Below, in pieces: positions 2,985-38,076 of a stretch of 64,000 nucleotides of DNA. The stretch spans positions 62,001-126,000 of IMG/VR virus record IMGVR_UViG_3300042261_002385; one strand, written 5' to 3'. The notes below the pieces were generated by a model. It had not been told where the DNA came from. It saw nothing but the letters and a program-made list of their open reading frames with translations, and did no database searches. The number at the start of each line of letters is the position of its first letter. Position 1 is the first letter of the stretch. The translations under genes and the position numbers were made by a program.

Positions 2985-3015
2985 AAAAAACCCTCAGATT
3001 TTCATCTGAGGGTTC
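2985..3015 (-). terminator. Intrinsic terminator (attenuator 1) upstream of tRNA cluster 1
   Basis: GAACCCTCAGAT-GAAA-ATCTGAGGGTTT followed by a U tract. Confidence 0.9.
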
Positions 3016-3045
3016 GTGTTATATTTAGTTATTATACGTCACATT

Positions 3046-3159
3046 TTACGAGACAAATTTTCTAAATAGATAGGAACCCTCAGAAGGTCTAATATTACAT
3101 AACGTAATATTCACCACATTGAGTGTCAGGTTCATCATATTTGTCGTATTTGTTCTCAT
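3046..3159 (-). CDS. Leader peptide 1, MRTNTTNMMNLTLNVVNITLCNIRPSEGSYLFRKFVS
   Basis: 37-aa ORF; first 24 codons use only the amino acids of the cluster-1 tRNAs; contains TCTGAGGGTTC, complementary to the terminator 5' arm. Confidence 0.85.
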   Translation of the reverse strand: MRTNTTNMMNLTLNVVNITLCNIRPSEGSYLFRKFVS

Positions 3160-3216
3160 TGTTGTTATATATTATAAATTATTAGTCTCTTTTGACTTTT
3201 TTGTCATTATTTTATA

Positions 3217-5425: not shown

Positions 5426-6163
5426 TTATTTTAATTTTATCAAAATTGGTAAATGGTCAGAAAGAGAATTTCTATTTCCTTTGTAAGGATAAACTAAAAC
5501 TTTGCTCTCGACAATTGTGTACTTTTTTTCAACAAAAAAATGATCATAATTATTTTCTGAAACAGAACCATCTCTTTTAAGAGACGTTCCTAAACCACAT
5601 AGTGGTGAATTAAAGTTTTTTAACATAGGAACATAAACTAGATGTTTACAGCTTAAATTGAAGTCTCCACAAATCAAACCATCGGTATATTGATATAATT
5701 TAGAAACTTCGTTTTGAGGAGTTTTGCTTGTTGGAACCAAATGAACTTCTCTAATCACTAAGTCTTTTTTATTAATTTTGAAAGACGCCACAAAAGGTTC
5801 TCTATCAATTGAGTCCTGTAAAGAAGCATCTAATTTAGAATAATTTAATGTTATTGATTTTCTATAAAGATAAGCATATCTTTCAGCACCTTCCCCTGTA
5901 GTTCTTGGTGAAATTACATAATTATAATCTAATATTTTTGCCATTTTCATAATACAAGAGTCACCATAAGGACCAGTGATGACCTCTTGAATAGCTACTA
6001 TGTCAGCACCTGATGATTTAATTACAGTTGTTAATCCAGTAATGACCGAATCTCTTTTAAATTTAGTTTCACCTAAATTTTGTATGTTCCAAGAAAGGAT
6101 TGTTTGTGAATAAGATATGTATGATAATAAGATAATTATAAATAAGAAAATGTTTTTCATCAA
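5426..6163 (-). CDS. Secreted endonuclease/exonuclease/phosphatase (DNase I-like)
   Basis: Signal peptide; SWNI, AIQEV, GDFN, YDH, SDHLP motifs. Confidence 0.9.
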   Translation of the reverse strand: MMKNIFLFIIILLSYISYSQTILSWNIQNLGETKFKRDSVITGLTTVIKSSGADIVAIQEVITGPYGDSCIMKMAKILDYNYVISPRTTGEGAERYAYLYRKSITLNYSKLDASLQDSIDREPFVASFKINKKDLVIREVHLVPTSKTPQNEVSKLYQYTDGLICGDFNLSCKHLVYVPMLKNFNSPLCGLGTSLKRDGSVSENNYDHFFVEKKYTIVESKVLVYPYKGNRNSLSDHLPILIKLK

Positions 6164-6176
6164 AAGTGTTTTCTTT

Positions 6177-6332
6177 CTATTTATTAATTTTCACATTTGA
6201 TTTTAATTTTCTTTTTAATCTTTTTATCATTTTAACTATTAAATCTTCTTTATCTTTTTTGTCTGATTCCAAATATCTAAAATTTCCTTTACTACTTTTA
6301 ATCTCACCTGTTATTATTACTCTTTCTTCCAT
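6177..6332 (-). CDS. Small hypothetical protein (51 aa)
   Basis: ATG-to-TAG ORF filling the gap in a minus-strand run. Confidence 0.5.
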   Translation of the reverse strand: MEERVIITGEIKSSKGNFRYLESDKKDKEDLIVKMIKRLKRKLKSNVKINK

Positions 6333-6347
6333 CTCATTAAATTTTTT

Positions 6348-6530
6348 TTATATAAAACCTTTTATTGTATTATTTTCTATTCTGAACACTACAAAATCTT
6401 CTAATTTACATTTGTTTAAAATGTCACTTTGGTCTAATACCTTACCCTGAGGAAAAGCAGTAAGTGAACCATCAACATTTTTGTAGATGATATAAAGCTT
6501 ACTATCTGATTTTCTTTTAAAGATTGTCAT
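6348..6530 (-). CDS. Small hypothetical protein
   Basis: ORF track. Confidence 0.55.
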   Translation of the reverse strand: MTIFKRKSDSKLYIIYKNVDGSLTAFPQGKVLDQSDILNKCKLEDFVVFRIENNTIKGFI

Positions 6531-6547
6531 TCATTATATTATTTTTG

Positions 6548-6620
6548 AGCGAGAGATGAGGTTCGAACTCACGACCCCCACCTTGGCAAGGTGGCGCTCT
6601 ACCAGCTGAGCTACTCTCGC
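6548..6620 (-). tRNA. tRNA-Gly (GCC)
   Basis: CCACC-TTGCCAA-GGTGG arm, U73. Confidence 0.93.
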
Positions 6621-6630
6621 TTATTTGATG

Positions 6631-6706
6631 TGGACCAGATGGGAATCGAACCCACCACACCTACCTTGCAAGGGTAAGTCGCCGAAGCCTTGGAACATGC
6701 TAGCCC
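6631..6706 (-). tRNA. tRNA-Ala (TGC)
   Basis: G3:U70 pair; TTACC-CTTGCAA-GGTAG arm; atypical D arm. Confidence 0.88.
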
Positions 6707-6710
6707 GTAG

Positions 6711-6782
6711 TGCGGGTAACCAGAATCGAACTGACATCACCGACTTGGAAGGCCGGTGTAATAACCATTATACGATACCCGC
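6711..6782 (-). tRNA. tRNA-Gly (TCC)
   Basis: CCGGC-CTTCCAA-GTCGG arm. Confidence 0.92.
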
Positions 6783-6793
6783 ATGTATTTCTG

Positions 6794-6874
6794 TCGGCAA
6801 GGTGGGATTCGAACCCACGTTTTCAACTTCCCGCTACGTGTATAGAATGTATAAGATTCCAACGGTACTTGCCG
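6794..6874 (-). tRNA. Non-canonical tRNA-like RNA with a TAT (Ile AUA) anticodon-like loop
   Basis: Perfect CGGCAAG/CTTGCCG acceptor and T arm; GGAAT-CTTATAC-ATTCT hairpin sits where the D arm should be. Confidence 0.6.
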
Positions 6875-6875
6875 A

Positions 6876-6909
6876 AATAAAAAAACCCAGTCCTTTTGAG
6901 ACTGGGTTT
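6876..6909 (-). terminator. Intrinsic terminator (attenuator 2)
   Basis: AAACCCAGTCT-CAAAA-GGACTGGGTTT plus U tract, directly upstream of cluster 2. Confidence 0.88.
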
Positions 6910-6930
6910 ATAAATATGTAAAGTCAAATA

Positions 6931-7014
6931 TTACATAACATAACTCAGTCTATAGACTTGACGCCCCGCGCCTGTCGCTATAAATCCAACTGATATGTTT
7001 GTAAAATTTTTCAT
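6931..7014 (-). CDS. Leader peptide 2, MKNFTNISVGFIATGAGRQVYRLSYVM
   Basis: ATA, GGA, ATA, GCG, GGC, GCG, GGG control codons; AGACTGAGTT antiterminator. Confidence 0.78.
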   Translation of the reverse strand: MKNFTNISVGFIATGAGRQVYRLSYVM

Positions 7015-7067
7015 TGTTTCTATTATATTTGTTATATATAAAAAGTTTTATTTCTTCTTTTATTTTG

Positions 7068-7150
7068 TTGGAAGGGAGGGATTCGAACCCCCGTACTCGT
7101 AAGAGAACAGATTTACAGTCTGTCGGTTTTAGCCACTCACCCACCTTCCA
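7068..7150 (-). tRNA. tRNA-Tyr (GTA)
   Basis: ACAGA-CTGTAAA-TCTGT arm, long variable arm. Confidence 0.93.
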
Positions 7151-7161
7151 ATAAAGCTTTG

Positions 7162-7233
7162 TAGTCCATACGGGAATCGAACCCGTCTCTCCACCGTGAA
7201 AGGGTGGTGTCCTAGCCGATAGACGAATGGACC
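7162..7233 (-). tRNA. tRNA-Glu (TTC)
   Basis: CCACC-CTTTCAC-GGTGG arm. Confidence 0.93.
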
Positions 7234-7252
7234 GTTTATCTGTTTTGTTTTA

Positions 7253-7284
7253 CAAAGATAAGGTAACTTTTCTAATCTACCAAA
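7253..7284 (-). promoter_or_regulatory. Bacteroidota-type promoter between attenuator 3 and tRNA-Glu
   Basis: TTTG-N20-TATCTTTG. Confidence 0.7.
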
Positions 7285-7293
7285 TCTTTAAAT

Positions 7294-7323
7294 AAAAAAA
7301 CCCAATCTTTTCAGACTGGGTTT
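7294..7323 (-). terminator. Intrinsic terminator (attenuator 3)
   Basis: AAACCCAGTCT-GAAA-AGATTGGGTTT plus U tract. Confidence 0.88.
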
Positions 7324-7343
7324 GTTAAAAGTAAATCAAATAT

Positions 7344-7415
7344 TTACAACACGCAAACTAGTCCGATTGGATTACTACCCTCGGCTTCATAATAATATGT
7401 TGTTATCATTTTCAT
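7344..7415 (-). CDS. Leader peptide 3, MKMITTYYYEAEGSNPIGLVCVL
   Basis: TAT-TAT-TAT-GAA-GCC-GAG run upstream of tRNA-Glu and tRNA-Tyr. Confidence 0.82.
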   Translation of the reverse strand: MKMITTYYYEAEGSNPIGLVCVL

Positions 7416-7436
7416 GCTTTGATTAATTATTTTTAG

Positions 7437-7509
7437 TAGCGGGGGTAGGACTCGAACCTACGACCTCTAGGTTATGAGCCTAGCGAGCTACCAACTACTC
7501 CACCCCACA
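7437..7509 (-). tRNA. Initiator-type tRNA-fMet (CAT)
   Basis: U1:U72 mismatch, fMet-like D arm, CTAGG-CTCATAA-CCTAG arm. Confidence 0.88.
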
Positions 7510-7593
7510 ATGTGTTATTGTATGTGTATATATAAAAAAAGTTTTCTCTATTTCTTTATTTTAAAGGATTTTTCAACTTAATATATAATTTGT

Positions 7594-8061
7594 ATGAGAT
7601 ATTTAACAGATTTTGGTCAATTTTTATATGAAGAACTACAATCTTATCAGTTTGAACTAATTTCAGACGATCGATTCATTTACAAATACTCATTTCAAGA
7701 TGTTGTAGGTAATAAATATTTAGTTGAATTTAAAAATATTCCTATAAGAAAAGTTGGTCAATTAAGTCACGTTTATGAATTAATGTATTATGTAGAAGAT
7801 GAGGGACAATATTCAGTTTATAAAATTGTAAATGTAAATCCTTATAGAGTTTTGAAAACTGTTTTTGGGGATATCTTAAATGATTTCACAAAAAGATGTC
7901 AGTGGGCTAAAATTATTTATTTTGTTGGATTAGCCAAAGAAAAAGAAAAACAATATGTCACATCAAGAACTAGAATATATAAAAGATATTTAGATATGAA
8001 TCCTGTTTCTGGCTTTAGAATTCAACAATCAGGAAATGCAATACAATTAACAAGAATATGA
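7594..8061 (+). CDS. Hypothetical phage protein
   Basis: ORF after an AATATATA motif. Confidence 0.7.
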   Translation: MRYLTDFGQFLYEELQSYQFELISDDRFIYKYSFQDVVGNKYLVEFKNIPIRKVGQLSHVYELMYYVEDEGQYSVYKIVNVNPYRVLKTVFGDILNDFTKRCQWAKIIYFVGLAKEKEKQYVTSRTRIYKRYLDMNPVSGFRIQQSGNAIQLTRI

Positions 8062-12780: not shown

Positions 12781-12908
12781 CGGGGATGGTTGGACTCGAA
12801 CCAACGACCTTATAATTTCAAAATATACGAAGTAACTCTTTCAATCAACACTCTTACGAGGTAAAGTTTCAAAAGAGATAGTTTTCTCTACCACTGAGCT
12901 AAATCCCC
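12781..12908 (-). ncRNA. 128-nt tRNA-like RNA with a large structured insertion in the anticodon domain
   Basis: Near-canonical acceptor, D arm (GCTCAGTGGTAGAG) and T arm (GTTGG-TTCGAGT-CCAAC) flank about 55 extra nt. Confidence 0.7.
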
Positions 12909-13415: not shown

Positions 13416-13487
13416 AACCCCACTTCACCAGGTTAACGGACTGGCTGCCATATGGGAGTGGGGGTCTCCTGTTATTCCAGGACTCCG
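13416..13487 (-). ncRNA. GC-rich structured RNA of unknown class, 3' of tRNA-Phe
   Basis: TCCTG/CAGGA, CCCCACT/AGTGGGG and CCAG/CTGG stems; possible ACGGA/TCCGT pseudoknot; strand inferred from context. Confidence 0.5.
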
Positions 13488-13732: not shown

Positions 13733-13789
13733 TTTTTTTATATATTGAATTGTTAAACTCTCTTTTTAAATTATTGTCATTATTCTATA

Positions 13790-37092: not shown

Positions 37093-38076
37093 ATGAATTG
37101 GACTTTAGAAGAACTTGGTTTTATACTTTACAATAATCGTTCAGTAAATGGAGTTGTCAAAAATTTCATACCTAAACACATCAATCCATTTAAGTTGAAA
37201 AAAATTGAGAGTGTTCTAAAAACATCAAAGTCTAAATTTCAATCAGATGATAGAATGGTTGAAGTAAATATAAATGAAATAAATCAACTATCGGAAGATG
37301 TCACAGTCACACCAGAAGAATTAAAAAGTCTATCAGAAGATTTTTATCTAAAATGTGGTAAATTCTCCTATGATGAGTTTCACTTTTTATTTGATAGAGG
37401 AGTGTATGACCAAGTAATGTGGAAATGGAGACTCTTTGGTCTATCTCAAATTGAAAATAGAAGACATCTTGAAATAATTGGAACCACAGTTCACCCAACA
37501 ATGAGTGGATTCTTAGATGACGCAATTGAAAAAGGTGGTATTGTAATTCCACTTTATGACGAAGATGATAACTTAATCAATTGTGCTGTTAGAAAAATAT
37601 CATTGGAAAATGACGGAACAAAAACTCTTAAATATACATTGGCTTGTCCAGATGTTCCAGTATGGGGATTAGACCAGATAGAAGAAGGTGATGAGTTTTG
37701 GATTACAGAGGGTATTTTTGATACAATGGCTATTTATGAATTAGGAGAAAAGTCGGTTTCTTGTTCTTCTGCTATGTGGTCCTCAATTCAACTTTATCAG
37801 GTATTGGAAAAGAAACCAAAGATGATTAAATTCTTTTCAGATAATGATGAAGTAGGCCTTAGAACATCCGCAATTTTGAAAGAATTCTTTACTCAATATG
37901 ATATACCCTCTAAAATATACATCAGTGAAAATCACAAAGACGCATCAGAACTTTACTTCTTAAAGAAATTGAATTTATCAACTTTAAAGGAGATTGAAGT
38001 GACCGATGATATGATAAACCTAAACAAAGACAATTCATTTAATTTCATAGAGCATCTCAAGAATAGAAAATTCTAA
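37093..38076 (+). CDS. TOPRIM-domain DNA primase-like protein
   Basis: IVIPLYD, ITEGIFD, DNDEVG, KDASE. Confidence 0.75.
   Translation: MNWTLEELGFILYNNRSVNGVVKNFIPKHINPFKLKKIESVLKTSKSKFQSDDRMVEVNINEINQLSEDVTVTPEELKSLSEDFYLKCGKFSYDEFHFLFDRGVYDQVMWKWRLFGLSQIENRRHLEIIGTTVHPTMSGFLDDAIEKGGIVIPLYDEDDNLINCAVRKISLENDGTKTLKYTLACPDVPVWGLDQIEEGDEFWITEGIFDTMAIYELGEKSVSCSSAMWSSIQLYQVLEKKPKMIKFFSDNDEVGLRTSAILKEFFTQYDIPSKIYISENHKDASELYFLKKLNLSTLKEIEVTDDMINLNKDNSFNFIEHLKNRKF

Follow-up and report, generated by a model that had tools for sequence, protein, structure and literature searches.

A block of four tRNA and tRNA-like genes on the minus strand of a huge phage genome is directly preceded by a short open reading frame (ORF) and an intrinsic terminator, raising the question of how, and in response to what, the transcription of these genes is controlled. 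To our knowledge, there is essentially no prior work on the regulation of phage tRNA genes. The purpose of these genes has been under debate for decades, and the proposals include compensation for codon usage, substitution for host tRNAs that have been degraded, and evasion of anticodon nucleases (PMC10264068, PMC11555353). The DNA analyzed here (referred to as the window) is a stretch of 64,000 nucleotides that corresponds to bases 62001–126000 of a 436-kb virus record with a genome GC content of 31.5%, and all coordinates are those of the window unless otherwise indicated.

Judged from its sequence, the locus is very likely a ribosome-mediated (leader-peptide) transcription attenuator that controls the phage tRNA-gene block. 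This interpretation was supported in that all of its testable sequence-level predictions held, both at the locus itself and across a family of related units. The locus comprises a start-to-stop ORF, clustered cognate codons, a terminator, an exclusive antiterminator, and a geometry that allows masking by the ribosome; on the promoter side, the evidence consists of a conserved motif only. The features of the locus and its immediate surroundings are listed in Table 1.

Table 1. Coordinates of the leader, its RNA structures, and the neighboring genes in the window
Feature	Position	Strand	Remark
Sister attenuator with YYYEAE leader	7298-7415	-	precedes tRNA-Glu and tRNA-Tyr
tRNA-Tyr	7150-7067	-	upstream of the leader
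Promoter-like motif	7031..7049	-	A-rich, then CTTTTTATATATAAC; about 17-30 nt before the leader ATG, just past tRNA-Tyr
Leader ORF, 27 codons plus TAA stop	6931..7014	-	reads MKNFTNISVGFIATGAGRQVYRLSYVM; kept in 27 orthologs
Region 1, codons 6-9	6988..6999	-	AACATATCAGTT; pairs with region 2 in the full-length fold
Sensor codons 7-17	6964..6996	-	two ATA, GGA, GGG, GGC, and two GCG cognate to the four downstream RNAs
Region 2, last codons of the ORF	6931..6951	-	pairs with region 1, or with the spacer and terminator 5′ arm
Antiterminator hairpin (regions 2:3), 56 nt	6898..6953	-	excludes the terminator and vice versa
Intrinsic terminator (regions 3:4)	6876..6909	-	11-bp stem 6909-6883, then TTTTATTT up to the next RNA
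Atypical tRNA-like RNA, TAT anticodon (would read AUA)	6793..6874	-	first regulated gene; ARAGORN, relaxed thresholds only
tRNA-Gly(TCC)	6710..6782	-	standard call
Atypical tRNA-Ala(TGC)	6630..6706	-	G3:U70, unusual D region; ARAGORN, relaxed thresholds only
tRNA-Gly(GCC)	6547..6620	-	standard call

Leader, downstream RNAs, and RNA folding

The original prediction placed a leader at 6876–7014, and all of its coordinates agree with a minus-strand, 27-codon ORF running from 7014 to 6931. The list of sensor codons was exact, with ATA at codons 7 and 12, GGA at codon 10, GCG at codons 13 and 16, GGC at codon 15, and GGG at codon 17, and the proposed GC-richness of codons 7–17 is equally apparent (51.5% GC versus 31.5% for the genome). 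It had further been claimed that these codons match Gly(TCC), Gly(GCC), Ala(TGC), and the TAT RNA; seven of the 11 codons are indeed readable by the anticodons of these RNAs, with the remaining four (TCA, GTT, TTT, and ACA) having no cognate tRNA in the downstream block. Of the codons in the long ORFs of the phage, 11.7% can be read by one of the four downstream anticodons. The binomial probability of finding seven cognates in codons 7–17, a stretch that was chosen after looking, is 6e-5, and that of finding seven among all 26 leader codons is 0.026. Three of the sensor codons, GCG, GGG, and GGC, are rare in the phage, each accounting for 0.2–0.4% of long-ORF codons.

Two of the four regulated RNAs, the TAT RNA and Ala(TGC), were missed by ARAGORN at default settings and at Rfam gathering scores, and are treated as candidate tRNAs, atypical and as yet unproven. 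In the TAT RNA, the acceptor stem and the T arm are normal but a regular D arm is absent. Its anticodon arm is enclosed by a 3-bp helix (CGT/ACG) and followed by a D-loop-like stretch (TAGCGGGAAG...). A homolog in the megaphage LR756502.1 carries compensatory changes in both helices (CAG/CTG and TGCATC/GATGCA), as judged by eye. Relatives of this RNA, labeled “???” by ARAGORN, are located directly after the same terminator in several phages, and an RNA of this type is also noted at about 3010–3090 (minus strand) of L003. On the basis of these sequence features, the TAT RNA may represent a rearranged tRNA class. In the Ala(TGC) RNA, the D region contains a GCTTCGGC mini-hairpin. Both RNAs, missed by standard tools, were predicted by the leader codons, which provides an annotation rule for atypical phage tRNAs.

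The terminator stem at 6909–6883 (−15.5 kcal/mol) begins 21 nt past the leader stop codon and is followed by a T-run. A one-mismatch pairing between the 3′ part of the leader and the terminator arm had been proposed, and this pairing was found, with AGACTGAGTT (6951–6942) complementary to AACCCAGTCT (6908–6899) at nine of 10 positions. The structure had, however, been under-described, as the antiterminator is a 56-nt hairpin and is joined by a helix between regions 1 and 2. By itself, the 10-bp core duplex is within chance (−10.1 kcal/mol, z −0.85) and was dropped as stand-alone evidence. It forms the base of the longer hairpin at 6953–6898, which was used in its place (−14.0 kcal/mol, z −4.25, unmatched by any of 200 shuffles) and is comparable in strength to the terminator. 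Bases 6909–6899 are common to both hairpins. The core of region 2 ends 8 nt before the stop, and its extension reaches the stop codon.

Folding of the whole leader (z −4.29 versus shuffles) yielded a structure holding both the region 1:2 helix (−13.7 kcal/mol) and the terminator; when the terminator 3′ arm was left out, region 2 folded instead with the spacer and the terminator 5′ arm. Ribosome-masked folds were computed with a 28-nt footprint on the leader codons. With the footprint on any of codons 7–17, the antiterminator was the minimum-energy fold, and once the stop codon occupied the A site, region 2 lay under the footprint and the terminator formed. The minimum-energy fold of the truncated transcript free of a ribosome is also the antiterminator, with 2:3 pairing preferred over 1:2 pairing. 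Consequently, termination without translation would depend on the 1:2 helix forming first.

Alignment of 27 ortholog sequences, from the ATG through the T-run, revealed that 73% of codons 7–18 encode Ile, Gly, or Ala, compared with 19% in phage genes. The choice among synonymous codons is also skewed: ATA accounts for 78% of the Ile sensor codons (35% in genes), GCG for 82% of the Ala sensor codons (7.6% in genes, with GCT never used), and GGC for 47% of the Gly sensor codons (5.8% in genes). Terminator pairing is held in 98% of cells of the alignment and the core 2:3 pairs of the antiterminator in 86%, as compared with 12–45% when the partner is slid. The 1:2 pairs are held in 78% of cells, with the core pairs present in 25–27 of the 27 orthologs. 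Within-family covariation is thin because the stems are nearly invariant among orthologs; one compensatory 2:3 pair was identified, being U-A in most orthologs and A-U in the window and in L071. Region 2 is conserved at the nucleotide level in spite of a 1-nt indel that separates two subgroups, one translating it as ...WLSYV... and the other as ...GWxML..., and the position of the stop is kept to about 3 nt. Conservation across two frames with the stop so nearly in place points to selection on the RNA and on the stop position rather than on the peptide.

Leader units in this and other huge phages

When the sequence upstream of every tRNA cluster was printed, five leader-plus-terminator units were found in the 436-kb phage, and the leader codons match the unit's own downstream tRNAs in all five. 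In addition to the Ile/Gly/Ala leader and the YYYEAE leader, which is followed by Glu and Tyr tRNAs, they comprise ...QVNPQPQDQDP..., followed by Gln, Asp, and Pro tRNAs; ...RKHSTFSKSTSWFS..., followed by Phe, His, Trp, three Lys, Arg(ACG), and Ser tRNAs; and MRTNTTNMMNLTLNVVNITLCNIR..., followed by Asn, an inserted HNH-type ORF, and then Ile, Arg, Leu, Asn, Val, Ile, Cys, Thr, Leu, and Leu tRNAs. The Leu codons of the MRTNTTNMMNLTLNVVNITLCNIR leader (CTG, CTC, and TTA) match the anticodons TAG, AAG, and TAA. Units are chained in series, Tyr/Glu, for example, being followed by Ile/Gly/Ala, and Pro/Asp by Gln. The tRNA-Met genes of the phage are without a leader, and a genome-wide scan of 87 terminator-like hairpins revealed no comparable leader before protein-coding genes. 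The inserted ORF, at about 2300–2880 on the minus strand, has an HNH-endonuclease-like Cys/His motif and lies between tRNA-Asn (2963) and the ten-tRNA block, within the unit of the Asn/Thr/Leu/Val/Ile/Cys/Arg leader.

Units in other genomes were collected with a finder blind to codon content, which required a hairpin and T-run 250–300 nt or less upstream of a tRNA, the leader being taken as the longest ATG ORF ending 10–50 nt before the hairpin. From 39 units in six huge-phage genomes and 84 from IMG/VR and metagenome contigs, 101 distinct leaders were obtained. Examples include MRTTTQYQQQQQINPTD, which precedes three tRNA-Gln genes; MKNKVGNISWSSRRRSSSRITCSW..., followed by four Ser, three Arg, and three Trp tRNAs; MKTISLCLCLLLANC..., followed by Leu, Cys, Leu, Leu, and Leu; MKNLTNISSQRFFQVVFFVQQ..., followed by Gln, Phe, and Arg, with Val further on; and MTTITTYTGKQYPQGKQTPTG..., followed by Pro, Gln, Tyr, Thr, Gly, and Lys.

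Under strict wobble rules, 35.3% of leader codons in the 39 units of the six genomes are decoded by the unit's own block, versus 14.4 ± 1.9% when blocks are permuted within a genome (z of the true pairing 10.9, 0/20,000). With codons 7–18 alone, the true pairing is the best permutation in six of six genomes; the per-genome permutation ranks are 1/120 once, 1/720 three times, and 1/5040 twice. Among the 101 leaders, the codon match is specific to the ORF frame (31.3%, as against 12.9 and 11.7% in the other two), which is the best frame in 90 units, and it is concentrated at codons 7–18 (44–54%, versus 10–17% at both ends).

The match extends to the level of the isoacceptor in the case of Arg, where leaders before Arg(TCT/CCT) contain 15 AGR and no CGN codons and those before Arg(ACG/GCG) contain three AGR and 16 CGN codons (P = 4.5e-7). 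The corresponding test for Gly, over all families, gave no contrast because no block had a GGY-reading tRNA alone, and that for Ile, again over all families, lay in the expected direction (P = 0.10); in both of these tests many blocks are cut by contig ends. Where sensor codons are read by a U34 anticodon, 127 of 242 end in G, compared with ∼39 expected from phage gene usage, a count that is inflated by orthologs. Rare G- and C-ending codons such as GCG, GTG, CCG, GGC, and TCG were also observed far above gene usage over all 101 leaders. Such codons may tune the sensitivity of the sensor or serve the RNA structure.

The geometry of the units is similarly uniform, with a median leader length of 27 aa and a median stop-to-hairpin gap of 24 nt (5–95% range 20–33). 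The complement of the leader-type terminator 5′ arm lies a median 22 to 11 nt before the stop (median z −2.56, 71% below −2). The fold-based antiterminator z has a median of −2.25 in the 101 leaders versus +0.07 in 82 other terminators of this phage (Mann-Whitney P = 5e-17), from which the antiterminator complementarity is absent. As the stems of different families are unrelated and each has its own upstream complement, this amounts to covariation at the level of the families. The region 1:2 helix, by comparison, is not general across the other leader families (median z −0.85). An MKNLxNIS N terminus is kept in many leaders.

The motif CTTTTTAATATATA (A or C) precedes 58 of 100 leaders and also lies immediately before tRNA-Met at 7509. 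It was observed together with a preceding AAAGRGA-like box, 10–30 nt before leaders, at 7031–7049, 7520–7545, 3165–3185, and 13738–13755 (all minus strand). This combination recurs across the genome, in about 95 loose copies, and may act as a promoter specific to the phage. In the sister unit, a promoter-like sequence of the Bacteroidota type is located at 7250–7283 (minus strand), between the sister terminator (7298) and tRNA-Glu, and in the megaphage LR745206.1 a sequence of this type precedes the sister leader. The placement in this phage may reflect a rearrangement that bypasses the attenuator.

Proposed mechanism and alternative explanations

In the proposed mechanism, which follows the classical four-region scheme of attenuation, transcripts starting at the promoter-like motif (∼7040) or arriving from the upstream Glu-Tyr unit would carry the 27-codon leader. 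When decoding of AUA-Ile, Gly, or Ala codons is slow, the ribosome would linger on codons 7–17 and cover region 1, leaving region 2 free. Region 2 would then pair with the spacer and the terminator 5′ arm to form the antiterminator at 6953–6898, and RNA polymerase would continue into the TAT RNA, Gly-TCC, Ala-TGC, and Gly-GCC genes. When decoding is fast, the ribosome would reach the TAA codon and cover region 2, the terminator at 6909–6883 would form, and transcription would end 8 nt before the first tRNA-like gene. The tRNA products would be expected to relieve the stall, so that negative feedback would keep the supply of phage tRNAs in line with demand. We infer that the leader is translated, that transcription and translation are coupled, and that the unit responds to decoding stress. 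Extended to huge phages in general, the units probably constitute a modular decoding homeostat, in which most blocks of tRNA genes are headed by a leader of their own, leader codons 7–18 list the downstream isoacceptors, and only those tRNAs that are needed are transcribed.

The same switch could instead sense amino-acid supply or general translation stress, the tRNA genes being merely stress-induced and the unit not a homeostat of tRNA abundance. As established for the trp, his, and phe attenuators, a leader peptide reports whether aminoacyl-tRNA can be delivered to the A site, and such a readout cannot separate a missing amino acid from a missing tRNA; sensors of several amino acids, moreover, resemble thrL and ilvL. 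Set against this, the Arg codons track the downstream isoacceptor (AGR versus CGN being 15/0 in one class of leader and 3/16 in the other), the orthologs of the locus prefer ATA, GCG, and GGC over the common ATT, GCT, and GGT, and the regulated tRNAs are themselves the readers of the sensor codons, an arrangement that is sensible only as feedback on decoding capacity. Sensing of amino-acid supply is for these reasons considered unlikely. Although the mechanism cannot in principle distinguish the two quantities, decoding capacity is favored over amino-acid supply as the one sensed, given the isoacceptor-level choice of codons and the identity of the regulated genes.

Were the hairpin a plain terminator of the tRNA-Glu/Tyr unit, the ORF and its codons would be due to chance, and the downstream genes would rely on their own promoter or on leaky readthrough. 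The hairpin does come after tRNA-Tyr with no intervening terminator, and the promoter-like sequence of the sister unit lies between its terminator and its first tRNA, as this explanation would have it. The 8 nt between the terminator stem and the TAT RNA, however, leave no room for a promoter, and the ORF, the sensor codons, and the stop position are kept in 27 orthologs; a plain terminator accompanied by a chance ORF was ruled out by the permutation, frame, and antiterminator tests on the family together with this lack of promoter space, making this reading highly improbable. Hardly more credible as the main role is an action of the leader product in trans, either as a micropeptide or as a terminated leader RNA functioning as a small RNA. 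Its attraction is the MKNLxNIS N terminus shared by many leaders, and trans roles have been described for sRNAs and peptides derived from the trpL attenuator of Sinorhizobium. The peptide is nevertheless not conserved at its C-terminal end, where the nucleotides are read in different frames, its middle varies with the tRNA block, it matched no family in Pfam or PHROG, and at the locus the conserved nucleotides of the N terminus are engaged in pairing with region 2; an action in trans, which may exist as an additional role, would also leave the block-specific codons unexplained. Least probable of all, to the point of being nearly negligible, is the reading as an untranslated RNA, tmRNA-like or T-box-like, to which tRNA would bind directly. 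A sub-threshold Rfam tmRNA match covers 6801–6990 (18 bits versus a gathering score of 47) and permuted tmRNAs carrying the tag AGRQVYRLSYVM are suggested by ARAGORN when its thresholds are relaxed, but the Rfam match rests on the tRNA-like 3′ part, and no tmRNA or permuted tmRNA exceeds the default thresholds of either ARAGORN or Rfam. No match to the T-box family RF00230 was obtained in 6500–7600 at E values up to 10, and binding through a single specifier would not require the codon match to be specific to the ATG-defined frame, as it is.

Relation to known attenuators and genome setting

The attenuator reading places the locus close to the trpL, hisL, pheL, leuL, thrL, and ilvL leaders of Enterobacteria, with which it shares a short ORF, clustered regulatory codons, an intrinsic terminator, an exclusive antiterminator with an upstream strand that a ribosome on the stop codon would cover, and, at this locus, a predicted 1:2 helix; sensing of several amino acids is shared with thrL and ilvL. 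A search with the Rfam Trp, His, Thr, Leu, and Phe leader families gave no match at E values up to 10. Unlike the enterobacterial leaders, the phage units, which are carried by huge phages, control tRNAs rather than enzymes, and their sensors are isoacceptor-specific and mix up to about eight amino acids. With tRNAs as the controlled genes, the loop would feed back on decoding capacity directly. In the pheST (pheM leader) attenuator of Escherichia coli, Phe-tRNA synthetase is regulated by the decoding of cognate codons. As in that system, attenuation in the phage governs a component of the translation apparatus; there, however, the target is a cellular synthetase serving a single amino acid, and in the phage it is the tRNA genes themselves, controlled in blocks. 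With T-box riboswitches the units have in common a choice between terminator and antiterminator that depends on tRNA status, upstream of translation-related genes, yet a T-box binds uncharged tRNA directly, through one specifier codon and the conserved T-box sequence, without translation, whereas the phage leader presents a run of codons within an in-frame ORF.

A search of cellular genomes with the leader N-terminus pattern gave 23 matches, mostly ordinary protein starts, none of which precedes tRNAs. Among the observations made there is an element in L218, a Fusobacteriaceae MAG, at about 2737 (minus strand), in which MKNFKNISMIIIIICSMVWI is followed by a strong hairpin and then by an ORF that we take, from its N-terminal sequence, to be a dihydroxy-acid dehydratase. 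It looks like a putative cellular ilv-type (Ile) attenuator. The element has the same N-terminal words and layout as the phage leaders and differs from them in being cellular, in addressing one amino acid, and in preceding a putative biosynthetic-enzyme ORF.

The proposed mechanism is textbook attenuation, extended to a new class of target, the decoder itself. No earlier description of the attenuation of tRNA genes was found in the full-text literature, a scope that leaves subscription journals largely outside, and as far as could be found, the use of tRNA genes as the target, their autoregulation, sensors for several isoacceptors at once, units in series, and the occurrence in a phage have not been described. 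If the interpretation is correct, the phage would gauge, one codon family at a time, where host translation is failing before transcribing its tRNAs, with codon-usage mismatch, tRNA degradation during infection, and anticodon-nuclease defence as possible causes of the failure. The units would then be the first case of leader-peptide attenuation of tRNA genes and a built-in sensor of tRNA-targeting immunity. Since the sensor codons name the tRNAs that the phage “expects” to lack, each hypothesis on the purpose of phage tRNA genes becomes testable block by block. The units also offer compact natural parts that would report the decoding capacity for chosen codons.

The closest named relatives of the phage are the uncultured megaphages LR756502.1 and LR745206.1, which originate from a French lake and a Japanese subsurface sample (PMC9723777). 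DNA nearly identical to 6300–7700 of the window is present in freshwater metagenomes (lake, river, and other). Promoter-like sequences of the Bacteroidota type (TTTG, then TAnnTTTG) occur at many units, which suggests, without being proof, a Bacteroidota host. As a check at the RNA level, four metatranscriptome runs were compared with the same 6300–7700 region. The pieces recovered were mostly tRNAs from other organisms, at 90–95% identity; three contigs, for which DNA carry-over or relatives are possible sources, cover parts of 6730–6896. These start inside the 3′ half of the terminator and cross the TAT RNA, and two enter Gly-TCC, with the same possible sources to be borne in mind.

Several further features were noted in the surroundings. 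A 245-aa ORF at 5426–6163 (minus strand) has a lipoprotein- or signal-peptide-like N terminus of the Bacteroidota type, and its motifs look like those of the endonuclease/exonuclease/phosphatase fold, to which we presume it is a candidate member. A GC-rich stretch without a tRNA call lies between tRNA-Phe and tRNA-His at 13420–13480 (minus strand). At 12790–12905 (minus strand), a tRNA-like gene with an internal insert, possibly an intron, received conflicting ARAGORN calls. Outside the window, at genome positions 37118–37204 (minus strand), a tRNA with a four-base anticodon call (agta) adjoins a tRNA-Met gene, and the two are located directly behind a promoter-like sequence of the Bacteroidota type, without a leader.
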